A model generated the notes under the pieces. That model saw nothing but the letters and a program-made list of their open reading frames with translations. It ran no database searches and had not been told where the DNA came from. From Macrostomum hystrix (lineage: Eukaryota > Animalia > Platyhelminthes), in contig CATNEN010000034.1 in assembly GCA_950097015.1 (NCBI GenBank), positions 3,906,001 to 3,970,000 of the forward strand: a DNA stretch of 64,000 nt. The letters run 5' to 3'. Position numbers and translations under genes: made by a program. Positions 9,701 to 29,700 of this stretch are shown piece by piece. Position 1 is the first letter of the stretch. Each line of letters begins with the position of its first letter.

Positions 9701-11128
9701 CTGTGCTTCTCACATCAGATTCTCACTCATATCTCCCTCACCCCTGTCTACCATTTAGCCTAGACCGAAATCAGAAGTCGATGAAGTCATTGTTGCTCAG
9801 TTAAATCAAAACACAGCTCTCAAATAGGCTAGGCATAACTTGCAAATCTATTTTGGTTGCTTGGCTTGTGATATCAACAGGAAAGTTTAGTTTCTACGAA
9901 ACTCTGATTTGTACAGCGAACCTGTCCGGCCTCACACTCACTGCTAGAGATAAATTCTTTGATTTTGACAGTCAGTAGGAAAACTTACAAATGTTTTGTG
10001 TGTGTGGCAAAATAGCTCAGGGTGGGTTATATAAAGGTTGACCCAAAGTGAACCTCGTTTTCTTTACTTTTTTATCTACAAATAATGCATTGAAACTTAA
10101 TCAATGTTTGGCTCTGATTTGCACTTTGAGAAGTACTCAATAATACGAGTATAATACGCGTGCACATGCAGTCACCTGTAAGTTTAAAATAATCGTCCAG
10201 TACATAGGTTGAAATTAAAATTGACACCTTTTTGGCTAATTGGCACATCATGAATGTTCCAAGCATGAATATGGGCCAACAGCAACACTAAACAATTTTA
10301 TTAAACTTCACAAAATAAATGGCAATCAAATTCTGTGAAAAGATTGGCAACTGATAGTTTCTCGGTGCGCAAATATTAATTTCCATATCATAAAAGATGT
10401 TGTCAGTTTTAAAAGCTTATTTTACAATAACTGATATATTTCTGGATTCCAAAGTGCGCAATAAATTGTATGAGAAGTTTCACACAAACTTCACATTTCG
10501 TAAACCATTTTTTCCTACTGCATCTCTAAAATTATACTACTTTGAGTAGCAATATGCAGGTTATTAAGAAACTAATTTACTGCAAAACACTTGCAAAACG
10601 AGAGCCAATTCAGTATGGTATATTCTACAGGTAGCTAATGCGCATTTTAGGTAGATTTACTGACGGGGATTTCAGGAAACTGATCGGGATTTTAAATAAC
10701 TCAAATGTATTTCAGGTAACTGACCGGGAGCTTCCATCAGTAAGTTAAGTAACTGAGGTGGGTTTTAGATAATCGATAGAAATATCAACGTAACTGAAAA
10801 GGGATTTCAGATTACTAATATTTGGAATCACATCGCTTAGGGGTTCAGCGGGTGGGAAAGATTTATCCTCGCTGGATACGGCTGGAGTGCCGCCAAATTA
10901 TCTACTGCAGTTACTTTCAGCCCCTCCTATTTTTTATTAATATCATATTATTAAAATTAAGAGAGACTCTAGTTAGCAGTGCAAATAATAAACGATAGCC
11001 AGATGAAAGGCAATTCTTTTGAGTAAAAAATAAGAAAAATTCCATGACCTTGAAAGAAATACAGAAATAAAGCTATAATAATGCGATATAAGCTAACAGA
11101 AGAAATGAATAGAAAAATATAGAACTAA

Positions 11129-13052
11129 CTAGCTTTTTTGCCCGTTGTTTCTGGGGCAGAAATTTAAAGCAAAGCAGTAAGCAATTCACGTCTCTGTATT
11201 AACTTTATAGTGAAGGTCACCATATATTCATTTACTGCATTAATGAAAAGTGAAGAGTTTGTTTAAGGGTGTTTTAAGTAAAAAATAAGTGAAAAGTTTG
11301 TCCAAACAGCCCCCTCTTGATTACTTCTTTAGAAACATGTCTCTTAGCCACTCCTCTATACAGTCAGTGGCAGATCCAGGAATTTTGTTTTGGGGCGGTC
11401 TGTCAGGGGAGCGCCATGAGAAACACAGAGTGGGTGCCAGCGGCCGAAAAAGGGCGCCAGGAGCCAAGAAAGGGCGCCAGCGGCTGAAAAACGGGAGCCA
11501 GCGGCTGAAAAAGGGGCGCCAGCGGCCGAAAAGGGGCGCCAGTCGCAGCACTGGCGCCCCTGGTGGGGGCATCTTATTCCCATGATTAAAATTTAGGGGG
11601 GCGACTGCCCCCCCGCCCCCCCCCTAAATCTGCCTCTGTATACAGTATGCATGTACACGCGTATACATAAGGAAAATAGCCATGGCATAACAATAACAAT
11701 GTCAAAGAAACAAAATTAAACTGTTTCAGAGTTCAGAGTTAGACAGGTCAAGGTCAATTCGTGACTACTTTTCTATTAATTGCTTGCGAGTCACCTCAAG
11801 GCCTGGGGATACACCACATTCTTCGTTCTTCCCCTTGGTGCGAAAATGAATAGGCCAGCTGGAGTTCCAACACGGGAGCAGGCGACATAAAGCTGCCCAT
11901 GCGAGAAGCAAGGAGTCTCCAGGTTGATGCCAGCCACCTTCAGCGACTGTCCCTGAGCCTTGTTAATAGTCATCGCAAAGCACACTCTCACAGGGAACTG
12001 CAGTCGCTTGAACTGAAATGGCAGGTCCGTGGGGATAATTGGAATCCGGGGAACGAACACAGACTCTCCTCTGCCAGATCCAGTCATTATCGTGGCCTCA
12101 ATCACGTGTGGGAAGAGCCGCCTGACTATCAGTCTGGTGCCGTTACACAGCCTTGGCGCATTCAGGTTGCGGAGGAGCATAATTGGTGCCCCAACTTTCA
12201 GCTGCAAGTTGTGCGATGGAGTTCCAGGAGGATCTAGAGAGTTCAGAAACTCAACAGGATACTCCACAGCGGTGTCATCAGTCAACGTTGTATCAATTGA
12301 CTTGTAGGTGAAAACTGCACCTGGCAACTCCTGAAGGAGTTGGTAGTTAATTTCGTTGGCGGCATCATTTCTAGGACACAGAATTGCCCTCTCTGACAGC
12401 CAGTCAACGCCAGCCTCTCTCTTTCTTCTATCCCAGGCTGGCTGGAGAGAAATATCGACCGGAGAGCCCTGCGCACTGGGACGCCACCGCACTCACCGCA
12501 CTCAGTCTCAGTGCTGCTTGGGGGCCAGTAGACAGTCTAGGGGTTTGGGCTGTGTACATTCACGGCTTGAAATGCAATGTACAGTCTGGGGCTTCGGCGC
12601 CCGGGGAAGGGAGGGGGTGGCTGTATTAAAATTTGGCCCGCAGAGTGGCGGAGGGGAGTTGGGGTGGCTGTCCTCGGAAAACAAAAAGTGACTCACTTTG
12701 AGATGATGCAGCTTTGCTCTGGATTGAGTAGAGATGTTCAAAATTGACAGCATTGTTGGAAAACATGTAAAGTGTAAGTGGATCAAATTTGGAGAAAATC
12801 TGACAAAGTGGGGCGACGATATGTCGAATTGAGTGATTTTTTGACGATTTTTGAGCAGTTTTTTGCACTTTTGAGCAGGAAGGAAATGATTTTTCGGGAA
12901 TTTGAGTAGCCTATTGCACTCAGCGTAGGTGGTTTTAGGTATGTGCAAAGTTTGGTGCGATTTGGTTGAGCGGTTTCGGCGTCTATAAAGACAAAAGGTT
13001 GCACACAGACAGACAGACAGACAGACAGAGTTTTCACTTTTATATATATAGA
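11129..13052 (-). mobile_element. Non-autonomous Helitron copy 1 (1924 bp)
   Basis: 5' TCTATATATATAAAA at 13052; 3' TGCCC-loop-GGGCA hairpin then CTAG followed by T at 11129; carries the C-terminal part of a PIF1-type helicase. Confidence 0.92.
11791..12492 (-). pseudogene. Helitron RepHel helicase C-terminal fragment (233-aa ORF, internally deleted)
   Basis: Motifs RAILCPRN, LKVGAPIMLLRNL...LCNGTRL, QFPVRVCFAMTINKAQGQSL, FSHGQLYVACSRV, KNVVY; no Rep domain and no N-terminal helicase motifs. Confidence 0.9.
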
Positions 13053-15342
13053 CTAGCTTTTTTTGCCCGTTGTTTTTGGGGCAGAAATCTAAAGCAAAGC
13101 AGTAAGCAATTCACGTCTCTGTATTAACTTTATAGTGAAGGTCACCATTTATTTATTTACTGCATTAATGAAAAGTGAAGAGTTTGTTTTAGGGCGTTTT
13201 AAGTAAAAAATAAGTGAAAAGTTTGTCCAAACAGCCCGCCCCCTCTTGATTACTTCTTTAGAAACATGTCTTTTAGCCACTCCTCTATACAGTCAGTGGC
13301 AGATCCAGGAATTTTGTTTTGGGGCGGTCTGTCAGGGGAGCGCCATGAGAATCACAGAGGGGGTGCCAGCGGCCAAAAAAGGGCGCCAGGAGCCAAGAAA
13401 GGGCGCCAGCGGCTGAAAAACGGGAGCCAGCGGCTGAAAAAGGGGCGCCAGCGGCCGAAAAGGGGCGCCAGTCGCAGCACTGGCGCCCCTGGTGGGGGCA
13501 TCTTATTCCCATGATTAAAATTTAGGGGGGCGACTGCCCCCCCGCCCCCCCCCTAAATCTGCCTCTGTATACAGTATGCATGTACACGCGTATACATAAG
13601 GAAAATAGCCATGGCATAACAATAACAATGTCAAAGAAACAAAATTAAACTGTTTCAGAGTTCAGAGTTAGACAGGTCAAGGTCAATTCGTGACTACTTT
13701 TCTATTAATTGCTTGCGAGTCACCTCAAGGCCTGGGGATACACCACATTCTTCGTTCTTCCCCTTGGTGCGAAAATGAATAGGCCAGCTGGAGTTCCAAC
13801 ATGGGAGCAGGCGACATAAAGCTGCCCATGCGAGAAGCAAGGAGTCTCCAGGTTGATGCCAGCCACCTTCAGCGACTGTCCCTGAGCCTTGTTAATAGTC
13901 ATCGCAAAGCACACTCTCACAGGGAACTTCAGTCGCTTGAACTGAAATGGCAGGTCCGTGGGGATAATTGGAATCCGGGGAACGAACACAGACTCTCCTC
14001 TGCCAGATCCAGTCATTATCGTGGCCTCAATCACGTGTGGGAAGAGCCGCCTGACTATCAGTCTGGTGCCGTTACACAGCCTTGGCGCATTCAGGTTGCG
14101 GAGGAGCATAACTGGTGCCCCAACTTTCAGCTGCAAGTTGTGCGATGGAGTTCCAGGAGGATCTAGAGAGTTCAGAAACTCAACAGGATACTCCACAGCG
14201 GTGTCATCAGTCAACGTTGTATCAATTGACTTGTAGGTGAAAACTGCACCTGGCAACTCCTGAAGCAGTTGGTAGTTAATTTCGTTGGCGGCATCATTTC
14301 TAGGACACAGAATTGCCCTCTCTGACAGCCAGTCAACGTCAGCATATCGAACCATCAGGTTTGGGTAAACTTTTGCCTTGAGCTCCTGCACTGACTGCAC
14401 AATGGTTCCGATTGTAGCGATCGATGACTGCCCATCCTCGGTGCTAATCTCCAGCAGACCATTGCCGATTCGCAATAGATTGGCAGAGAACTCATGAGCT
14501 GTTTCGTCTCCTTGAATTGTAGCTCTCATGTTTGTTCGTAGGTGCAACTTCACAACCGATGGCCACAGGTGAGATGATTTTAGGCAAGCATTAATCTCAT
14601 CAGCAGGAGTGCCACGCGGAATCACAGGCAGCGTCTGTCTAAAGTCTCCAGACAGCAGCAGAGTGACACCACCCATCAGTTGATCGCCAGCCTCTCTCTT
14701 TCTTCTATCCCAGGCTGGCTGGAAAGAAATATCGACCGGAGAGCCTAGCTGCGCACTGGGACGCCACCGCACTCACCGCACTCAGTCTCAGTGCTGCTTG
14801 GGGGCCAGTAGACAGTCTAGGGGTTTGGGCTGTGTACATTCACGGCTTGAAATACAATGTACAGTCTGGGGCTTCGGCGCCCGGGGAAGGGAGGGGGTGG
14901 CTGTAATAAAATTTGGCCCGCAGAGTGGCGGAGGGGAGTTGGGGTGGCTGTCCTCGGAAAACAAAAAGTGACTCACTTTGAGATGATGCAGCTTTGCTCT
15001 GGATTGAGTAGAGATGTTCAAAATTGACAGCATTGTTGGAAAACATGTAAAGTGTAAGTGGATCAAATTTGGAGAAAATCTGACAAAGTGGGGCGACGAT
15101 ATGTCGAATTGAGTGATTTTTTGACGATTTTTGAGCAGTTTTTTGCACTTTTGAGCAGGAAGGAAATGATTTTTCGGGAATTTGAGTAGCCTATTGCACT
15201 CAGCGTAGGTGGTTTTAGGTATGTGCAAAGTTTGGTGCGATTTGGTTGAGCGGTTTCGGCGTCTATAAAGACAAAAGGTTGCACACACACACACACACAC
15301 ACACAGACAGACAGACAGAGTTTTCACTTTTATATATATAGA
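13053..15342 (-). mobile_element. Non-autonomous Helitron copy 2 (2290 bp), joined head-to-tail to copy 1
   Basis: A|TC 5' end at 15342; its 3' CTAG (13056-13053) abuts the TC of copy 1. Confidence 0.92.
13720..14772 (-). pseudogene. Helitron helicase fragment (350-aa ORF) including the GDFRQTLPV motif
   Basis: MGGVTLLLSGDFRQTLPVIPRG...LRTNMR through to KNVVYPQALR*. Confidence 0.9.
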
Positions 15343-16415
15343 TAATAGATGTATTTGAAACTGCTAAGAACACCCCCGAGTGAGGCGATAGCTGCAGAGC
15401 TGGCCCGACAGCTGACTGAAGGTGACTAAACGAGGCCGAAGCTAAAAACTGCAGTAGGAGAGCAGCAGGACAACCTTAACAACCAAACAAACACTGCAAG
15501 TCTGTGCGGACGGACTGATTGACAGACTGAACGAATTCACAATTTGATACATTTCCGTTTCTGAATTTCATCTATATATAAGTTATAAAGCAACCAGGGT
15601 ACCGATTTTTATACATGCCGAGTCAATCTATTTTCTAGAATTAACGGGAATAAAATATTATCCAATCTTAAACGGCTCTACCATTTGAAGCATGTATATA
15701 TCTTTTGAATAAACAACTTGGCAGAACGACCAAATATCTTTTAGACAGCTGAACATAGGCAACCGAATATTCTCATTATTCTAGTGCTGATTAATACAGG
15801 TTTACACAATCGAAGAGCAATGGACCTAAATGCTAAGAGAAAAAGCTATGAACAAAATAAATATATCAATGGCTGAAAGAGAAAAAATACTTGAATAACA
15901 TTCCAAAGCCTTTTACATTTTGCTATAATTTTGGAGCATGTGTATAAAAATGAAGCGCGCAGATTCAACATGTTCAAAAGTAACTTATTTTAATGATCTT
16001 TATTCACTGTGATTAAGTAGGCCTAGTAACTTTACATTTTGCGTCTTTGTCTTTGCAGTGGTAATGAATACAGACTACAGAGCCGTTACATATTTTTTGT
16101 TCCAGAGCTTTATTGACCGAGTTTAACATGGTGTTCGTTAAACAGAACAATAACGTAAATCAATCACATATAATTTGTAATTTCTATATGAAAAGCAATA
16201 GCTATCCTATGACTATCAGCCTATGCAATATGTTGTGTTCTAAATATCAAAATATGCCACATAAGTTAAAAAGTTATGAATTGTCAATTCCTTTTATAGG
16301 CCTAGATAAAAATATTTTTTTATAAATCATTTGGATTAAAGACATATAATTAATCTTAAAGTATACTTTAGTAAGATACGCACAGCAAGTTACATTTCTC
16401 ATTGCTCTAGTATGC

Positions 16416-17023
16416 ACGTTGGCGACATTTTACCGCGCGGTAAAAACCGCTAACTTTACCGCATAGTGAACTATGCGGTTTTTTCCGCACTGTTTAAATA
16501 CCCTCATTTCAGGCTTTGACTATGCGGTGAACTATGCGGTTTTTTCCGCACTGTTTAAATAACCTCATTGCAGGCTTTGACTATGCGGTGAACTATGCGG
16601 TTTTTTCCGCACTGTTTAAATAACCTCATTTCAGGCTTTGACTATGCGGTGGACTATGCGGAATTTACCGCACTGTTTAAATAACCTCATTTCAGGCTTT
16701 GACTATGCGGTGAACTATGCGGAATTTACCGCACTGTTTAAATAACCTCATTTCAGGCTTTGACTATGCGGTGAACTATGCGGAATTTACCGCACTGTTT
16801 AAATAACCTCATTTCAGGCTTTGACTATGCGGTGGACTATGCGGAATTTACCGCACTGTTTAAATAACCTCATTTCAGGCTTTGACTATGCGGTGAACTA
16901 TGCGGAATTTACCGCACTGTTTAAATAACCTCATTTCAGGCTTTCCGCTTTGACTATGCACTGAACTATGCGGTTTTTTTCGCACTGTTTGAATAACCTC
17001 ATTTCAGGCTTTGACTATGCGGT
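16416..17023 (+). repeat. Left arm: terminus plus about 9 copies of a 61-bp unit (CCGCACTGTTTAAATAACCTCATTTCAGGCTTTGACTATGCGGTGAACTATGCGGAATTTA)
   Basis: 61-nt periodicity; reverse complement of the right arm. Confidence 0.92.
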
Positions 17024-17245
17024 CTCGCGCTCCAGAGGTGTAGACTGGCTTAAGTTTTTGAACGGCGCGCCAGGCTTGGGTCTTCTTGTCCGCGATGATC
17101 ACATCCGGGCTCATCACCGGGACACCCAAGTAGCGGAAGTCGCTGCACGCCGCGATGACCTCACCGTTGGGCAGGGCCAGGGGCGGTGGGTCCTCAAATC
17201 CCAGGTGTAGTACCTCCATCTTGCTGCCGTTGACGGTCAAAGTGA
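17024..17245 (-). mobile_element. Fragment of a non-LTR (RTE-like) reverse transcriptase
   Basis: LTVNGSKMEV...DFRYLG...AWRAVQKL matches the RT C-terminal/thumb region; abuts the inner end of the left arm. Confidence 0.7.
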
Positions 17246-17499
17246 GTGTGAGCCGCTGAGTGTCAAAGAATAAAAATAACTAACCAACTGCTTGGAGCTT
17301 AGACCGTTTGACTAAGTTTATTCTTAGCTGGATAGCTGAGACAATGACCATTACACTAGTCAAGTTAGTAAGTTATTAAATAAAAATAATATATGAAATT
17401 ATTTAATTAAAGGAAGTTAATGTTAATAATTTATTTAAATTTTTCTTATTTATTTATTTCTTATTACTAATTAAGTATACTAATTTACATAATTATCAC

Positions 17500-19157
17500 T
17501 TTCAGCGGCCTTGCATGAAGCCGTAACAACAGATTCCACTGCTCCCCTTAGAGGCACCAATCAAGTTCGAGGACGTCACTTGGGAGCTTGCCCACCTGAG
17601 GGAGGATAGTGCCCCAGGGCTCGACAAGATCCCCAACAATGCCCTCAAACGTGGTCTCGAACACGTCTCAGTGACCCGTATAACCAGTCTGTTCAACGCC
17701 TGTTTTGAACAAGGCCACTTTCCCAGCCCCTGGAAAAAAGCAGTAGTAGTGATGCTACCAAAGCCTAACAAACCCCGAGATGACCCAAACTCATACAGAC
17801 CAATCAGCCTAACATCCTGCCTAGGCAAAGTTTTTGAAAAAATCATTGCGCGGAGGCTAAAAAGCCACCTGGAATCCACGGGCGCACTGGGTGCAGATCA
17901 ATGCGCCTACAGGAAAAATCACTCCACTTATGATAATCTGTGCCGCTTGGTGCAGAATATCATGGTGGCCAAACACAAGAAAAAGAAATTATCCGCAGTC
18001 CTGCTATAGATGTCGAAGCAGCCTTTGACTCCGTCTGGCAGGACGCACTGCGGTACCAAATGATCCAGGCAAACCTCCCGGGGCGGGTTCTTAGTATCTG
18101 CTCCAGCTACCTTCGGGACAGGTTGGTCCTAGTGAGGGTTAACTTAGCCCTCAGCCAGTCGTTTAAACTCAAGGCTGGCGTCCCCCAGGGTGGAGTTATC
18201 AGCCCACTCCTCTATCTGCTCTTTGTGAGCACCATGCCAACCCCAAAAACACCTGGAGTAGAACGAAGCCAGTTCGCCGACGACATGGCAATCTGGGCGT
18301 CGGCGGAAGGTTTCGTTAAGCTCAGGAAAAACCTGCAGCGCTACCTGGATGAAGTCCATAAATGGTGCGGCGTGCAGGGCATCAAAATCAATGCCGGAAA
18401 AAGCCAGGCCATAACCTTCAATTGCAACAAACCCAGGGTAGGGTGCCAGGACAAACGGCCCCAACTCCACCTGGGAACTGTGCAAATACAAAACTGTGAT
18501 GTAGTTAAGTTCCTGGGCATAAAGCTGGACACTAACCTGAGACTTAATGAACACGTAAAATCACAAATCAACACTTGCAGAGCGCAGGTGATGTGCCTTA
18601 GCAAGATTGCAAAAAAGACCAATCTGAAGAGCGACACTCTGAAAATGCTATACCGGGCTTACGTGGAGAGCACCATGACATATGGAGCACCCATTCTAAC
18701 AATCCTAAGCCCGGGAAACAAGAGTGACCTTCCGAAAATTCTAAACATTGCCCTCAGAATCTTCTATGGGATCCCATCCTACATCTCCACCAGCTACTTG
18801 CATGAGCATGCCCAGATGCCCCTGGTAGCGAACAGGATTGATGATCTGGGGACCCGCTGGCTCCTTAAAGCCTGCAAGGCTAAAATCCACACCCTAGACA
18901 GGCGCCCTGATCCGATTAGGATAAAACCGGGGTCCAGAATGCCTGTTCTACATCACCTCTGGGAAATCCTGGAGAGGAGAATAGCTGCTGCTACACCAGC
19001 GCCCAGGGGTCCAGGCAGGACAAACTAAAAGAGGCAGCTGTTGCTGCAACAGCAACCAAAAAACAATCTCCAGCACCCAACATATGCAGCAGTTTATCTC
19101 ATGTTGTGCTTGCTCTTTAGTTTGGCAAAAAAGTGGAAAAAAAATAATAATAATAAC
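17500..19157 (+). mobile_element. 5'-truncated, frameshifted non-LTR retrotransposon (Jockey/I-like RT)
   Basis: SAPGLDKI, WKKAVVVMLPKPNK, SYRPISLTSCLGKVFEKII, frameshift near 18005, DVEAAFDSVW, GVPQGGVISPLLY, QFADD, VKFLGI; one in-frame stop near 17523; (TAA)n-like tail near 19143-19157. Confidence 0.9.
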
Positions 19158-19916
19158 AAGTCCCGGCACTAGACACTAAGCCATCCAGGTATTCCTTTGG
19201 GTCATTTGGCAAGTTTCTTACCAGCTTACTGCAAGTAGGTGATATTGGGGTGAGAAGTGTTTTCTAGGTTTGAGTTACGAAGATTTCAAGCTTGAACTAG
19301 ATTGGGGTGGGCGTATGGGCTTGGGCTTGTTGATTTATTATTTGGCTGAAGCATAATCTATATATATAAAAGTGAAAACTCTGTCTGTCTGTCTGTCTGT
19401 CTGTGTGCAACCTTTTGTCTTTATAGACGCCGAAACCGCTCAACCAAATCGCACCAAACTTTGCACATACCTAAAACCACCTACGCTGAGTGCAATAGGC
19501 TACTCAAATTCCCGAAAAATCATTTCCTTCCTGCTCAAAAGTGCAAAAAACTGCTCAAAAATCGTCAAAAAATCACTCAATTCGACATATCGTCGCCCCA
19601 CTTTGTCAGATTTTCTCCAAATTTGATCCACTTACACTTTACATGTTTTCCAACAATGCTGTCAATTTTGAACATCTCTACTCAATCCAGAGCAAAGCTG
19701 CATCATCTCAAAGTGAGTCACTTTTTGTTTTCCGAGGACAGCCACCCCAACTCCCCTCCGCCACTCTGCGGGCCAAATTTTATTACAGCCACCCCCTCCC
19801 TTCCCCGGGCGCCGAAGCCCCAGACTGTACATTGTATTTCAAGCCGTGAATGTACACAGCCCAAACCCCTAGACTGTCTACTGGCCCCCAAGCAGCACTG
19901 AGACTGAGTGCGGTGA

Positions 19917-20618
19917 GTGCGGTGGCGTCCCAGTGCGCAGGGCTCTCCGGTCGATATTTCTCTCCAGCCAGCCTGGGATAGAAGAAAGAGAGAGGCTGGC
20001 GTTGACTGGCTGTCAGAGAGGGCAATTCTGTGTCCTAGAAATGATGCCGCCAACGAAATTAACTACCAACTCCTTCAGGAGTTGCCAGGTGCAGTTTTCA
20101 CCTACAAGTCAATTGATACAACGTTGACTGATGACACCGCTGTGGAGTATCCTGTTGAGTTTCTGAACTCTCTAGATCCTCCTGGAACTCCATCGCACAA
20201 CTTGCAGCTGAAAGTTGGGGCACCAATTATGCTCCTCCGCAACCTGAATGCGCCAAGGCTGTGTAACGGCACCAGACTGATAGTCAGGCGGCTCTTCCCA
20301 CACGTGATTGAGGCCACGATAATGACTGGATCTGGCAGAGGAGAGTCTGTGTTCGTTCCCCGGATTCCAATTATCCCCACGGACCTGCCATTTCAGTTCA
20401 AGCGACTGCAGTTCCCTGTGAGAGTGTGCTTTGCGATGACTATTAACAAGGCTCAGGGACAGTCGCTGAAGGTGGCTGGCATCAACCTGGAGACTCCTTG
20501 CTTCTCGCATGGGCAGCTTTATGTCGCCTGCTCCCGTGTTGGAACTCCAGCTGGCCTATTCATTTTCGCACCAAGGGGAAGAACGAAGAATGTGGTGTAT
20601 CCCCAGGCCTTGAGGTGA
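19917..20618 (+). pseudogene. Helitron helicase C-terminal fragment (233-aa ORF)
   Basis: Same translation as 11791-12492. Confidence 0.9.
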
Positions 20619-20770
20619 CTCGCAAGCAATTAATAGAAAAGTAGTCACGAATTGACCTTGACCTGTCTAACTCTGAACTCTGAAACAGTTTAATTTTGTT
20701 TCTTTGACATTGTTATTGTTATGTCATGGCTATTTTCCTTATGTATACGCGTGTACATGCATACTGTATA

Positions 20771-21043
20771 CAGAGGCAGATTTAGGGGGGGGCGGGGGGG
20801 CAGTCGCCCCCCTAAATTTTAATCATGGGAATAAGATGCCCCCACCAGGGGCGCCAGTCGCAGCACTGGCGCCCCTTTTCGGCCGCTGGCGCCCCTTTTT
20901 CAGCCGCTGGCTCCCGTTTTTCAGCCGCTGGCGCCCTTTCTTGGCTCCTGGCGCCCTTTTTCGGCCGCTGGCACCCACTCTGTGTTTCTCATGGCGCTCC
21001 CCTGACAGACCGCCCCAAAACAAAATTCCTGGATCTGCCACTG
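20771..21043. mobile_element. GC-rich MITE nested in the Helitron (also at 11365-11638 and in copy 2)
   Basis: Imperfect TIRs CAGAGGCAGATTTAGG / CCTGGATCTGCCACTG, with internal GGCGCC-rich repeats; TSD not resolved. Confidence 0.65.
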
Positions 21044-21659
21044 ACTGTATAGAGGAGTGGCTAAGAGACATGTTTCTAAAGAAGTAATCAAGAGGGGGCT
21101 GTTTGGACAAACTTTTCACTTATTTTTTACTTAAAACACCCTTAAACAAACTCTTCACTTTTCATTAATGCAGTAAATGAATATATGGTGACCTTCACTA
21201 TAAAGTTAATACAGAGACGTGAATTGCTTACTGCTTTGCTTTAAATTTCTGCCCCAGAAACAACGGGCAAAAAAAGCTAGTTTGGTATAAAGGGCAGTTG
21301 TCACTGTCACTTTAGAGGGCAGGGGAGGATGTTCTCTAAGTGATTTAGATAGAAATTGAATAGGCTTAGAACCGCTGGGGGGTCATATTTTTTTGGCAAG
21401 AGTAGGCTATAGAAATTAGGCGGGGTGGTGGGTGTCTGACAGTTTACCTAACAATGGGCCGGAACTGGAAAGATAAAGTACAATTTTTTTAGGGTTCAGG
21501 CTAGTTTATGGGCACGGGACAGTATTGGCTCAGCATTGCAAGGCCCTGCCAGTCCAATTCGCATCACTTTAAGAGTTCAATGATCATTAGATTATTTTAC
21601 TAAAAATTTGCAATGCCCTATGCCCTCCGATACGGAGTCGTTTTTTGCGGACACAAACC

Positions 21660-22030
21660 AAACCAAACCAATTCACCAATGTAAACCCTAGGCTGCTCCC
21701 CTTGTGTGTGATGCGCCAGGACTATCAATCTAGCTTTTTTTCCCATCAATTCTTCTGTCAAACCAATTTACCAATGTAAATCTGTCAAACCAATTTACCA
21801 ATGTAAACCCTAGGCTGCTCCCCTTGTGTGATGCGCCAGGACTACCAATCTAGCTACAAACTCTCAAATAAATTTTTTCCATCAATTTTTCTGTAACCCT
21901 CCAATGCGAAAAAACGCACTACAATCTCAATCTACCTATAACTCACCTAGGCTGCTCCCCTTGCGATGCGCCAAAAGCTATCAATCTAATTACTAAGCTC
22001 TAATCTTTCTGCTAAATTACAAATGCGAAA
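21660..22030. repeat. Degenerate direct repeats (CCTAGGCTGCTCCCCTTG...GATGCGCCA...TATCAATCTA), 3 copies
   Basis: Copies near 21688, 21808 and 21947. Confidence 0.6.
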
Positions 22031-24398
22031 ATGCGATACCCTAACCAATTTGGGGGTTGGCTAGGCTTTGCAAATTCATATGTACTATGCGCTTGTCTTA
22101 GATTTCCTCTTTTATCCTGATGTCCTAATCTTTGTGAGGACCCATTTTTTATCCCAATCATGCGCACTCAATATACCAAAAAATATTTTCCATTCGTTTT
22201 TTTTTATCGTGTAAAATATTTTTCGTCAATCGTATCCAATAAATATACAGTACCTACAGCGGAAGAGCCCCTCCCAGGGCTGACCCGCGGGTCTTAGACC
22301 CAAACCTCTTAAAAAAAAAAAAAAAACAACAGATTCATAGCAGAATGATCTACAATGTACCGCTTCTCAGAGAATAATATTAGGTCACGTGCAAATAACA
22401 GCTTGACAAAAAGAAAATTTGAAGTGCGTGACCAACTTAAAATTATACAACGAAGCTTTAGCTGATTGAATTAAAACAATATTTTAGTAGTGGTGCCTTT
22501 AGAATAATCGGATGCTGCAAAATATTTATTTACCATCGGAATTTTGCAAAACCCAAAATAACATACAAGAAGTAAGTCCGATTCGTCTTATTCTCAGTAT
22601 CACAAAATTCCGGGTCCAATTCAGAAAGCACACGCGAAAAAATGTGAACGAAGGGTTTTGTCTAGAACTTTCGAACCATTTGATCAAAATGCTTAATTTT
22701 GCACAGAGTTGTATAAAAATATGTGCTTGAGGTGGTACAAATGTGGTACAGGCTGTACGAGCGTGTGTATTCTATTTTTGGAGAGAGAAGACCATTTGCT
22801 ACCGGGAATGACTTCATTAAAACTTCAGACGATGATTTCTTACTTATTAAAGCTTGTTCAGATCAACTTTTGAGCTCAAAAGATGCACATTTTGCTGAAA
22901 TTTTATAAATTAAAAAACGGTACAGGAATCTAGTCAAAAGCAAGGACGCTAGTGATCAGCCCAATGCCAGCCGCACCGATTTTTTTAAATCCGGAAATAT
23001 ATTTGAAGGCTTCAAAAGTGACATGAATAGCAATATGAAGATGATTTGACGTGTGGTACAATTAAATCTTGTCAAAATCTATTAGAAAAGACGGATTTTG
23101 CAAGTGGTACAAGTGATTTAAAAAAGTGATGCGGCTGGGTTGCGGCTAGAGACACGTCGGTGCATTGCGCTAGAATATGTCGGATATTGCCGTGCGTTGG
23201 TCCCTGTTGAAAAATGGGATGTTCTAATATCAGCAATCGTCAATATCGGTGCTATGGCCGTGTCAAGACCAAATAATATTTTGTACCTGTTTCTGAAAAT
23301 ATGCTAGTGCTAAAAAGGAGAACCGGTATAAAAGATGTAGGGAAATTCTATAATATAGTTTTTAAGAAAACACACATTATATTAAATAATGTAGTCAGTA
23401 AATACACTATACCAGATATAAGACAGCATATATTGCTTAAGTATAATAGAGTCTGACCAAGCCTAGATTTTAGTTGAGTTGAGTACTTGGTTGTGTATTT
23501 TGTTCTTAATTTAAGCAATTCAAGTCAGATTCAAGTAGGCACTGGTGTCTTTACTCTCCAGTCCTTGCTGGGCGTTTTTAGTAGATCAGATCAGGTCACA
23601 GCCTCAAAAAACTAACCAAAAACTTAAACACATTCTTACTCAGTTATTAGTGATTTGCTTTACGCCACACTGGCGCATTTATTTGTCTCACGTGAATTGC
23701 AGTCCTTTATACACACATTTTTTTAAATGAATGATTTCATTTGACAGAATATTATTGATTATTCTACATACTTCAAAAATTTACTGCATTTAAACAAAGA
23801 GCATGGGTACAAATTTGACTTTTTTATAATAAAAGCATCCATATGCCGGCCTACTACAATCAGTATTTCGTTACTTAACTTTGCATGGCAATATTCAATT
23901 TTTTTAATATCATTTACGTAATAATAATAAGTAATAACTCTCTTTGTAAATGTACGCTACACTGGTGCTTCTAAACTAGATTAGGTGGCGTAAGTACCGT
24001 GTGCGAGCCCTATTAACAAATCGGTAAATAAATCAAGCACCTGATTTGAGACTAACGAATTTGTAAGAACATTGCAGTAAAACGAAGGTACCATAAAAAA
24101 CGTAGCATAAAATAATCAAACTACACTACCACAGTACCTTTCGAAAAAGTATTCCACATAACTCTGTAAAGTTTTAATCGGGGATTTAAAGGAAGAGACA
24201 TTGACTGCAATGTCGCTCCGTCATTTGCAATTCAGTCCGTTGACTAATTTCATAATTTTTGTACCGAAATACGCCTTGCGTCAGCATCCTGCAATTACTA
24301 TTTGCTTACTGTTTTGGCTCTGGACGAGTTTTCGCTGTGGAACTTTTTGTCATTACAGACGTGCACAATGCAACAAGACTAATTACCACGACTGAAAT

Positions 24399-26200
24399 GC
24401 CTGCAATGAGGTTATTTAAACAGTGCGGTAAATTCCGCATAGTCCACCGCATAGTCAAAGCCTGCAATGAGGTTATTTAAACAGTGCGGTAAATTCCTCA
24501 TAGTTCACCGCATAGTCAAAGCCTGAAATGAGGTTATTTAAACAGTGCGGTAAATTCCGCATAGTTCACGGCATAGTCAAAGCCTGAAATGAGGTTATTT
24601 AAGCAGTGCGGTAAATTCCGCATAGTCCTCCACCGCATAGTCAAAGCCTGCAATGATCGAGGATATTTAAACACTGCGGTTTTTTAGATGTTATAAACAG
24701 TGCGGAAAAAACCGCATAGTTCACCGCATAGTCAAAGCCTGAAATGAGGTTATTTAAACAGTGCGGTAAATTCCGCATAGTTCACCGCATAGTCAAAGCC
24801 TGAAATGAGGTTATTTAAACAGTGCGGTAAATTCCGCATAGTTCACCGCATAGTCAAAGCCTGAAATGAGGTTATTTAAACAGTGCGGTAAATTCTGCAT
24901 AGTCCACCGCATAGTCAAAGCCTGAAATGAGGTTATTTAAACAGTGCGGTAAATTCCGCATAGTCCACCGCATAGTCAAAGCCTGAAATGAGGTTATTTA
25001 AACAGTGCGGTAAATTCCGCATAGTCCACCGCATAGTCAAAGCCTGAAATGAGGTTATTTAAACAGTGCGGTAAATTCCGCATAGTTCACCGCATAGTCA
25101 AAGCCTGAAATGAGGTTATTTAAACAGTGCGGTAAATTCCGCATAGTTCACCGCATAGTCAAAGCCTGAAATGAGGTATTTAAACAGTGCGGAAAAAACC
25201 GCATAGTTCACCGCATAGTCAAAGCCTGAAATGAGGTTATTTAAACAGTGCGGTAAATTCCGCATAGTCCTCCACCGCACAGTCAAAGCCTGCAATGATC
25301 GAGGTTATTTAAACACTGCGGTTTTTTAGATGTTATAAACAGTGCGGAAAAAACCGCATAGTTCACCGCATAGTCAAAGCCTGAAATGAGGTTATTTAAA
25401 CAGTGCGGTAAATTCCGCATAGTTCACCGCATAGTCAAAGCCTGAAATGAGGTTATTTAAACAGTGCGGTAAATTCCGCATAGTTCACCGCATAGTCAAA
25501 GCCTGAAATGAGGTATTTAAACAGTGCGGAAAAAACCGCATAGTTCACCGCATAGTCAAAGCCTGAAATGAGGTTATTTAAACAGTGCGGAAAAAACCGC
25601 ATAGTTCACCGCATAGTCAAAGCCTGAAATGAGGTTATTTAAACAGTGCGGTAAATTCCGCATAGTTCACCGCATAGTCAAAGCCTGAAATGAGGTTATT
25701 TAAACAGTGCGGTAAATTCCGCATAGTCCACCGCATAGTCAAAGCCTGAAATGAGGTTATTTAAACAGTGCGGTAAATTCCGCATAGTCCACCGCATAGT
25801 CAAAGCCTGAAATGAGGTTATTTAAACAGTGCGGAAAAAACCGCATAGTTCACCGCATAGTCAAAGCCTGAAATGAGGTTATTTAAACAGTGCGGTAAAT
25901 TCCGCATAGTTCACCGCATAGTCAAAGCCTGAAATGAGGTATTTAAACAGTGCGGAAAAAACCGCATAGTTCACCGCATAGTCAAAGCCTGAAATGAGGT
26001 TATTTAAACAGTGCGGTAAATTCCGCATAGTTCACCGCATAGTCAAAGCCTGCAATGATCGAGGTTATTTAAGCCCTGCGGTTTTTTAGATGTTATAAAC
26101 AGTGCGGAAAAAACCGCTAACTTTACCGCAGGGTAATGTGTTGACATTACTATGCGGTAAAGTTAGCGGTTTTTACCGCGCGGTAAAATGTCGCCAACGT
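24399..26200 (-). repeat. Right arm: about 28 copies of the 61-bp unit with three longer variant units, plus terminus
   Basis: Reverse complement of the left-arm unit; variant inserts near 24650, 25290 and 26055. Confidence 0.93.
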
Positions 26201-26703
26201 CTAGTATGCAATATGACTAGTAAATGCTTTCAAATAGAAAATTTTGCTTTTCTTTTAAGTAGGGGGCCTATATAAGAAGGTTGATTGTACCTTTATCTAT
26301 AATGTAAAATATTTTTGGGATAAATATTATTATATTTTTTAATGTTGTGCTAAATTCAATGTTGCTATTTAGTATTTATGATGATAACTTCACTGTTATA
26401 AAAAGTATAACAAGACAAAAGTAATTTGATATTTCAGTGTTTTAACTGTGATGTACATAATATAGCTAAATAAAATCTTTAAATTATTGGCTAACAATAA
26501 AGGTTTTGCTATTTACATAACATATATTCATTATAACTAGGCTGTGCTTCTTTATTTAGATGCAGGTATTAGCTATCTGAGACTTAAGAAATGAGATATT
26601 TGTAGCCAGCCATACTTGCAGCTTCACCACTATAATCAAATTTCTTTCTGAAAAAGTTTCATTCTTTAAAAACTTTAATTTCAGTGCAAATTTGACAAAA
26701 GCA

Positions 26704-29700
26704 ATGGACTTCTTGCCTTACAAAGTAGTATCTGTTGCTAATCATAGTGAACCTGGCTATGATTGTCTGGTCATTATTGGAGATAATCCAAATGACCTAG
26801 GGGACAGATTTTCTGAAACGGCCACTACTGTTGGTGACTATTGCAAGGTAAGTTGGCAGGCTGAAGTCCATAGTTGTAAGACATTTCAATATCAATTTCA
26901 ATGGCTCAACCCCTGAATAATCCCTATGAACCACCCCACCAAATCAACAGGCGGACGCATCTGCCTTATCCGGCGGCGCCACTATCCTCTTACCGTCAGG
27001 TCCACAGGGCCGCCTCATTTTCAGCAACACCGGCCCTCTGAATCGAGACCAGGATGACGTGCGCCGACTCTACGACGCCTCAGCCGCTGGTCTTTCCCGA
27101 GCCATCAGCGCCGGCTCCAGGCAGCCAATTCTGGCTGTGGCCAAGCTGGCCAGCTTGCCGATTGGTCGGGAGACTTGGGCCAATCAGCTCGTCGCTGAGC
27201 GTGCCGCAATCCTTGGCGCAATGCAGGCTCTGTACACGCCATTGGAACTGCGCGAACTGCCCGGCCGTCCAGCCAAGATTGACCGCCTGGGCTTCCTAGC
27301 CGGTGCCGGCGCCTCCGTGGACGAAGCCGAGACCCGCCTGCGGCTGGCCATCGCCCTGGAGGCGGGCCGCACGCTGGCCAGAGACATCGGCGCCTCCGAT
27401 CCGGAGCGGATGACGGCGAGCCGGGCGGCCGAACTGATCCGATCTGTCATTGGTCCTGGCGTTACCATCGAAGTCGAGGACGCCGTCGACCCGGCCAAGT
27501 ATCCGCTGATGGCGGCCGTGGATCGCGCAGCCTCCGGCATTGCTAGACACGCAGGCCGCATCGTTCACCTGAGCTATCGCGGCTCCGGCGAGTGCCCCGA
27601 GCCGCTGTTCTTTGTCGGCAAGGGCATCACCTACGATACGGGCGGCGCCGACGTGAAGGCCGGCGGCCACATGGCCGGAATGCACAGGTGCCCACAGCTA
27701 CACAACACACCATTGAGCCAGATGTACACCCCAAATTTACCGCGCACTGCAATGGGGGTGTCTAGCTAAAGGAAAAAACGGTTTTACATGGGTGATATTC
27801 GAACTCCTGACCTTTTGGTCAGATTTCCGTACTGGGCTTCAAGCTTCCTATAATAATAATAATTGCAGAAGGGCTGCGGGCAATGTCACATCATTTGGTG
27901 ACACTATACCTGCAGCCAGAGAGGAGACAATTCTGCCCATTTCGCTGACTCCTGAACACACACGTACACCGATACTGTACGCAGGCACACGCTCACACAA
28001 GTCTGTACATCTGCCCTGACTTTCTCATCGTCAGGCAGTGTACAACAACAAACAACAACAAAGTACGCTGTCAGGTGGAAAAGGCAGCGTCACAGTGCAC
28101 GCTTCAGAGCCTGGGCGCGAACAAAGGCCGCACCGCCGGCAGTGTCCGGGGCGCCAGCATCGGCCAGCAGGCAGTCGACGAAACGCCGAGTTCGGGCCTG
28201 GCCGCGCCGGTAGGGTGCCTGCAGCGTTAGCAGCAGCACCTCCTGCACCGGCTGCGGGCAGTAGGACTCGGCGCGGATGATGTGGCCTGCAAGCTGGAGT
28301 CGCCGAAGTCGCAGCAGTTCACTCGGACGGGCCAGGCCGGCGCGACGATAGAGTGTACAGTGTAGTGTACAGTGTACACTCACTCTCATTGTGCCTTGGA
28401 GGTTGGCCCTCAAGGGCGTGAATTGCACGACAAGCCCCCAAGCCTTCTCTCCGCGGCTGCGCCCCAATTTAATGTGGCCTCACGGCGGAATCGAGCTCAG
28501 GGACCTTGGTGCGAGAGGCAAACGTGTTAACCGCTCTGCAACTGACCCCCTTACAAGCCTCCTTGTCTGACTGTCAAGACTTTAGATGAAGAAAAATGAA
28601 ATATAAACGAACTTTTAAAGGGTAATTTAGCTAAATACAATCTCAAGTAATAATTATTCTTAATTCCCACCCAGGGATAAATGCGGCGCCGCAGCCATCG
28701 CCGGCCTGTTCCGCACTCTCCAGCTGCTCCGTCCGCCACGCATTGAAGCTCACGCCAGTCTTGCCTTCGTGCGCAATTCAATCGGCTCGAATAGCTACGT
28801 GGCAGATGAGATCATCACTAGCAGGGCCGGGGTTCGAGTCCGGGTTGGCAACACGGATGCGGAAGGCCGCATGGTCATGGCCGACCTGCTCTGCCTCATG
28901 CGAGAGCGAGCCCTGACCCTGCCAAATCCATCCTCGGCCAGCCTATTCACCGTGGCCACTCTCACTGGTCACGTGATTCGCGCCTACGGAGTCCACTACG
29001 CGGCCGCAATGGACAATGGGCCAGCTAGGCTCAAGGGCACGAGCGGTCGGCTTCAGAAGGCTGGCGACCTCATTGCTGATCCATTCGAGGTAAGAAGCTA
29101 TTTAGGGTGTCTCAGAGCAAAGTTGTTACCGTATTTTATCACCAAGCTTAGATCAGGCTTAAGCGGTAACCCTTCGGGAGCAATATAATTATGCAGCTGA
29201 CCTCCCAGATCCTCAGGATTGGACAGCTGACCTCCCAGATCCTCAGGATTGGACAGCTGACCTCCCAGATCCTCAGGATTGGACAGCTGGCCTCCCAGAT
29301 CCTCAGGATTGGACAGCTGGCCTCCCAGATCCTCAGGATTGGACAGCTGGCCTCCCAGATCCTCAGGATTGGACAGCTGGCCTCCCAGATCCTCAGGATT
29401 GGACAGCTGACCTCCCAGATCCTCAGGATTAGGCAGCTAACCTCCCAGATCCTCAGGATTAGGCAGCTGACCTCCCAGATCCTCAGGATTAGTCAGCTGA
29501 CCTCCCAGATCCTCAGGATTAGTCAGCTGACCTCCCAGATCCTCAGGATTAACTAGGCAGTCAGTTTCAAGGACTATAGAAAGTTGAAAAGTCTAGAATA
29601 ATTAGGGTACAATTTGTGTCTCACAGTCCAACCCAAACTATTCAGATCTCGACGATTCGCCGCGAGGACTACAACATGGTGGAGCCGAAGACCGAAGCCG

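Follow-up and report, generated by a model that had tools for sequence, protein, structure and literature searches.

Among the described foldback systems closest to the element reported here, Rehavkus combines a 9-bp target-site duplication (TSD) with long terminal inverted repeats (TIRs), a PHD finger and minisatellites (PMC6446971), and the Rehavkus elements of Tribolium carry variable subterminal arrays that have sometimes expanded into satellites (bioRxiv 10.1101/2024.12.02.626372). Tetris of Drosophila virilis is a non-autonomous foldback element with TSDs of 8-10 bp for which an autonomous copy was not found, and the foldback structure as such can arise in different lineages (PMC4079207). 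For another foldback-type element, a larger number of repeat units is reported to raise transposase binding (Liu and Wessler 2017, cited in bioRxiv 10.1101/2024.12.02.626372). Here we analysed a window of 64,000 nucleotides from the flatworm Macrostomum hystrix (assembly GCA_950097015.1, contig CATNEN010000034.1, positions 3,906,001 to 3,970,000), in which positions 16416-26200 are a single insertion, a 9.8-kb copy of a non-autonomous foldback DNA transposon with arms built of 61-bp units. This copy carries no gene of its own and very probably belongs to the NOF/Rehavkus branch of the Mutator superfamily. Positions without a prefix refer to the window and loci elsewhere are given as contig handle and coordinates. 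The ends and arms of the window copy are as follows.

16407..16415, no strand: left TSD CTAGTATGC, the same 9-mer abutting both element ends
16416..16467, plus strand: left 52-bp terminus, which begins ACGTTGGCGACATTTTACC and has a 52/52 inverted match to 26149-26200
16466..17023, plus strand: left arm, a 61-bp array of 9.0 units with 93% matches (Tandem Repeats Finder)
24399..26058, minus strand: right arm, a 61-bp array of 26.2 units with 82% matches (Tandem Repeats Finder)
26059..26148, minus strand: right subterminal segment, whose outer part forms a palindrome with the inner terminus (arms of about 27 bp)
26149..26200, minus strand: right 52-bp terminus, from base-by-base comparison with the left end
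26201..26209, no strand: right TSD CTAGTATGC, the same 9-mer abutting both element ends

The probability that the 9-bp flanks match by chance is about 4e-6. The ends of the 61-bp family read ACGTTAGCGAC, and because the base A precedes CGTT in 29 of 30 family termini, we set the duplication of the window copy at 9 bp and let the element run from A to T. An 11-bp duplication, TCTAGTATGCA, had been offered beside the 9-bp one by the first-pass annotation; it is an artefact, as its extra bases are the element's own end bases A and T. In the same way, a TIR starting at C, with a TSD of 10 or 11 bp, fits more poorly than A...T ends with 8 or 9 bp. That annotation had read the two satellite blocks as the arms of one insertion, which the inverted 52-bp termini and the perfect 9-bp TSD bear out. 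The asymmetry that it described is likewise real, with about 9 units on the left, although the right arm is nearer 26 units (Tandem Repeats Finder) than the 28 or so that it counted.

The window copy is one of many. In the window's own 220-Mb assembly, from which all genome counts were taken, about 100 termini make up the family to which this terminus belongs, and the copies are mostly of the size of miniature inverted-repeat transposable elements (MITEs). The first 60 bases of the terminus have 46 matching places, a 36-mer of it is found at 33 places with at most 3 mismatches (0 in the control), and the 18-mer end at 63 places with at most 1 mismatch. Many of these termini form inverted, MITE-like pairs 42 bp to 1.6 kb apart, and a few pairs are 3-18 kb apart. 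About 30 pairs were fetched and their flanks scored, which gave a perfect 9-bp TSD in 8 pairs, a 9-bp TSD with one mismatch in 4 pairs and in a fifth after by-eye correction of one disrupted end, and a perfect 8-bp TSD in 6 pairs. The genome search and TSD tally suggested by the first-pass annotation thus returned many inverted, TSD-flanked pairs; as the boundary, the inverted pairing and the duplications recur across copies, they are properties of a family and not a coincidence at the window locus, and this family has transposed repeatedly.

Some termini deviate from the common form. A variant with four extra bases (ACGTTAG-GCCC-TAGCGAC) is common to copies in the C29:1426177 and C39:8507470 regions and marks a subfamily. 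A terminus cut short after about 66 bp is accompanied by the same flanking and interior sequence at C38:22522045-22522095 and C3:7236446-7236496, and to judge from that identity it lies in a segmental duplication or in a redundant part of the assembly. Solo termini on C3, C38 and C5 were considered as transposase carriers and rejected, since they contain host genes (AIG1 GTPase, PUA domain) or truncated ends.

Two sister copies match the window copy at 96-99% identity, one at C8:1705199-1709792 in the opposite orientation and one at C3:9547652-9551864; they have their own, different TSDs, and both lack positions 17537-22324 of the window. They give the basic size of the element as 4.2-4.6 kb, a mosaic of repeats without a gene, and because the three copies have this mosaic in common and each its own duplication, we conclude that the whole 4.2-4.6-kb unit moved in trans. 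The window copy owes its greater length to a truncated long interspersed nuclear element (LINE) that entered it and to a 1.9-kb Helitron that afterwards entered the LINE; the first-pass annotation had overlooked that half of the interior is this later insertion. The interior is composed as follows.

17024..17536, no strand: family core part 1, a mosaic of other dispersed repeats without a gene, 96-97% identical to the C8 and C3 copies, with sub-segments matching other repeat families
17537..22324, plus strand: nested 5'-truncated LINE, absent from the sister copies
19357..21280, plus strand: non-autonomous Helitron of 1.9 kb inside the LINE, with 5' TC and with 3' CTAG after a hairpin, sitting between A and T
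22325..24395, no strand: family core part 2, an AT-rich mosaic, 99% identical to the C3 and C8 copies

The first 830 bp of core part 2 and one 300-bp segment of it belong to other repeat families, and the core that remains without the insertions (17024-17536 and 22325-24395) has no open reading frame (ORF) of at least 80 aa. Captured host exons, by which a Pack-MULE (MULE, Mutator-like element) would be recognised, were not found in the interior, where the matches are to dispersed repeats, the LINE and the Helitron. The nested LINE contains RVT_1 in two ORFs (17671-18009 and 17940-19028), ends in an A14 tail at 22311-22324 and is bordered by a 12-bp duplication, AACAACAGATTC, at 17525-17536 and 22325-22336; the same LINE is found uninterrupted at C1:19125629-19128471. 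The Helitron within it carries a fragment of the Pif1 2B domain (Pfam PF21530, 2e-19) and has dozens of matches at 97-100% identity among the matches listed. Hence, in annotation, the reverse transcriptase and helicase matches inside the window copy are to be treated as nested passengers and not as its own genes. Just upstream of the foldback element, at 11127-15346, several full or partial copies of this Pif1-fragment Helitron lie head to tail, with matches at C34:3917127-3919059, 3919052-3920343 and 3920685-3921346.

The arrays of the two arms are mutually reverse-complementary over up to 458 nt at 96-98% (repeat finder), and the right one shows in addition a higher-order period of 243 bp and contains a variant block three times. 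Every 61-bp unit contains a 31-bp stretch that is 84% like the inner part of the terminus; conservation per position of the unit singled out no short binding motif. The subterminal palindrome is common to most family copies and has been deleted from the left arm of the window copy. In the arm adjoining 17024, the window copy has 9 units, the C3 copy about 18 and the C8 copy 12, and in the other arm the numbers are 26, 3.5 and 2.5, respectively; given such widely differing unit numbers in homologous arms, array length changes fast relative to point mutation. The suggestion that the element also seeds a satellite found no support. The 61-bp array matches of the assembly that were compared with the terminus lists all adjoin a family terminus, the largest array is the right arm of the window copy itself (1.66 kb), and in one study the contig depth summed over the unit, a poor proxy for copy number, is no more than about 100-fold that of the single-copy flank. 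Thus, no free 61-bp satellite outside element arms was seen, either among the assembly array matches checked or in the contig depth of that study.

The placement in the NOF/Rehavkus branch is drawn from decayed relatives of the window copy and from a second foldback family of the same genome, built of 170-bp units. A member of the latter at C34:1953527-1973722 has ends that begin ACGTC and an 8-bp duplication, and a perfect 8-bp TSD was found in 6 of 10 further pairs (7 of 11 overall). This family encodes a transposase with an open frame of 962 aa, present as several 100% identical open genes. The 962-aa frame has no Pfam match above threshold, and a search with the protein returned only four relatives, all unnamed; the Atlas cluster that it fits best is "protein in NOF-FB transposable element" (0.98), followed by a MULE cluster, and its C-terminus has weak matches to the Pfam entries PHD (0.026) and C48 (Ulp1; 0.024). 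Both families have in common an ACGT tip, 8-bp TSDs, inverted subterminal arrays and a transposase of NOF type. They differ in that the 170-bp family is autonomous, with intact frames of 962 aa or more in several identical copies, whereas the 61-bp family has gene fragments only; in that its arms measure 5-17 kb, against at most 1.7 kb in the mostly MITE-sized copies of the 61-bp family; and in the terminal sequence, which is unrelated after the fourth base. Two further copies of the 170-bp family were observed in passing. One, of 2.9 kb, at C38:17424679-17428382, has an 8-bp duplication, and a 61-bp-family terminus is found about 700 bp away from it. The other, of 8.6 kb (C24:5478921-5478950 and 5487564-5487593), has 20-bp flanks that are exact reverse complements, with no direct duplication, and may mark the middle of a more extensive inverted duplication or rearrangement.

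Within the 61-bp family, the coding remnants come from a relic pair of termini 17.8 kb apart, C7:6774511-6792333, which contains one genome match of the 962-aa protein (E 4e-24, 30% identity, residues 130-422). Translated searches (tblastn) with this transposase matched residues 130-536 and 814-917 in the relic, colinear and on one strand, the coding fragments being split by insertions of Copia and LINE retroelements. With about 50 matches of the 962-aa protein in 220 Mb, we put the chance that any particular 18-kb interval contains one at about 0.5%. In the Atlas, each of the ten best family-bearing clusters of the 296-aa relic ORF is a MULE cluster, and the ORF is 30% identical to the transposase of the 170-bp family. 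A 3-kb copy at C1:27108742-27111780, which has kept its two termini and is flanked by an 8-bp TSD, aligns with the C7 copy over 2.3 kb at 95-96% identity and contains, in the same order as the latter, an Ulp1-type Cys box and a PHD-like motif, CDSCRMWCHTVCA, at weak E-values. Paralogs of the relic ORF are not close, with the best being 47% identical and interrupted by a stop codon, and there is therefore no working transposase of the 61-bp lineage in the assembly. The C7 pair was also considered as an autonomous copy and rejected, since it is a relic without a TSD that has been invaded by Copia and a LINE. The Copia element at C7:6775862-6780506 has an open gag-pol of 1291 aa and 255-bp long terminal repeats that are 99.6% identical, and looks young.

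With its TSD-flanked copies and the NOF/Rehavkus-type transposase fragments in its relics, the family agrees with the first-pass description as a non-autonomous element of Foldback/Mutator type. The 9-bp TSD of the window copy falls within the 8-11 bp of the NOF/Rehavkus foldback group of Mutator, and its long TIRs with subterminal tandem repeats are likewise those of that group. The search for a copy with a MULE DDE transposase, as the first-pass annotation had suggested, led to gene fragments in the decayed C7 copy and not to an intact gene, and none of the 41 genome matches of the MULE transposase domain (PF10551) lies beside a family terminus. Several observations speak against the placement. 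Searches of the window copy and its two sisters, including those with the 962-aa protein, revealed no transposase sequence. Furthermore, about 7 of the roughly 30 pairs have no TSD, and in the family as a whole TSDs of 8 bp occur beside those of 9 bp. As the C7 copy lacks a TSD and retains just 44 bp of the right terminus, it may not be one intact element; its coding sequence is linked to the 61-bp family by position, by colinearity and by the 95-96% identity of the C7 copy with the C1 copy, which is flanked by a TSD. Matches to the C-terminal part are weak, with E-values of about 1e-3 to 1e-4 in small searches, and Pfam showed no MULE domain in the relic ORF or the 962-aa protein, in which no DDE residues were identified.

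It could be asked whether the two arms are ends that belong to different elements, or form an inverted segmental duplication, and enclose unrelated DNA by chance, as they differ greatly in length (9 against 26 units), the subterminal palindrome is missing from the left one and the interior is a patchwork of other repeats. However, a perfect direct repeat of 9 bp stands at both ends, and two other loci have the same arms and interior with TSDs of their own, which makes this explanation extremely improbable. It is also very unlikely that the family is part of a different superfamily that makes 8-bp duplications (hAT, P, Zisupton/KDZ) and acquired its foldback look independently. Six pairs do have a TSD of exactly 8 bp, and foldback structures can originate in more than one lineage (PMC4079207); but 9 bp is commoner than 8 bp in the 61-bp family, the sole coding remnants inside family copies are NOF/MULE-like, and the NOF-type 170-bp family, which shares the ACGT tip, itself makes 8-bp TSDs. 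An assignment to hAT does not agree with TSDs mostly of 9 bp and with ends that are long and modular, no search aimed at hAT genes having been made.

A different question is which enzyme kept the family moving. No intact gene of the 61-bp lineage is left, as set out above for the relic ORF, yet three copies are 96-99% identical and have perfect termini, while the 170-bp family has several identical open transposase genes and ends that likewise start with ACGT. The 61-bp family might thus still be mobile through the active transposase of the 170-bp family and not through its own decayed enzyme. We regard such cross-mobilisation as unlikely, since the two families agree in no more than the first four bases of their termini and have unrelated subterminal repeats, the TSDs obtained for the 170-bp family were all of 8 bp while those of the 61-bp family are mostly 9 bp, and an autonomous copy may be missing from the assembly or have been lost recently. 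The narrower proposal that the gene-less family is still being moved, and that the 170-bp-family transposase mobilised its three copies of 96-99% identity although the ends of the two families have only ACGT in common, is in our view quite unlikely.

For a gene-less member of the NOF/Rehavkus branch, we propose that a DDE transposase supplied in trans would bind the 52-bp termini, and probably also repeated motifs in the 61-bp units, and would then excise the element and reinsert it with cuts staggered by 8 or 9 bp, in a cut-and-paste manner. A larger number of units may strengthen this binding. The arrays might change in length by unequal exchange or slippage. The enzyme that served the young copies could perhaps have come from an autonomous copy missing from the assembly, or could be the active enzyme of the 170-bp family.

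Compared with the described systems, the window copy differs from Rehavkus (the Repbase group, and Rehavkus-1_TC and -3_TC of Tribolium) in having no transposase, and the 61-bp family in having a TSD of 8 or 9 bp; the 61-bp unit and the termini are unrelated to any sequence compared. TCsat12 in Tribolium is a satellite expansion, and none was seen for the 61-bp unit. With FB-NOF and Tetris the family has in common modular tandem-repeat arms, the foldback design and mostly non-autonomous copies, and the transposase of its 170-bp sister family falls into the Atlas cluster named after the NOF-FB protein. The repeats of Tetris gave rise to a satellite, which was not seen for the 61-bp repeats, and the likeness to FB, NOF and Tetris was judged from their descriptions. 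The 61-bp family is thus a new family, decayed and non-autonomous, of a known foldback kind: the term "undescribed" used in the first-pass annotation applies at the level of the family and not to the kind, which has been described in beetles and flies (PMC6446971; bioRxiv 10.1101/2024.12.02.626372; PMC4079207).

Downstream of the element, a Peptidase_M17 exon lies at 27059-27769, and the first exon of this M17 aminopeptidase gene likely runs from an ATG at 26705 to a GT donor at 26849. The predicted ATG lies 496 bp after the right duplication, in agreement with the first-pass placement of the element about 500 bp upstream of the aminopeptidase start. By this position, the window copy could affect the gene. 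An empty site was not found in the window's own assembly, where the left flank is single-copy. Among the contigs of three runs from one study, the one that contains the flank ends at 16416, where the boundary of a repeat would lead one to expect a break, and none joins both flanks.

The window copy adds a second, independent foldback family, with a 61-bp unit, to a flatworm genome in which a very active one of 170 bp is present. This one locus illustrates the usual life cycle of such elements: the decay of an autonomous element, the multiplication of short derivatives, arm arrays that vary from about 3 to 26 units between near-identical copies, and the arrival of further transposons. If cross-mobilisation by the 170-bp family were true, end recognition in the NOF/Rehavkus branch would need very little sequence, and the amplified subterminal arrays would act as interchangeable landing pads.

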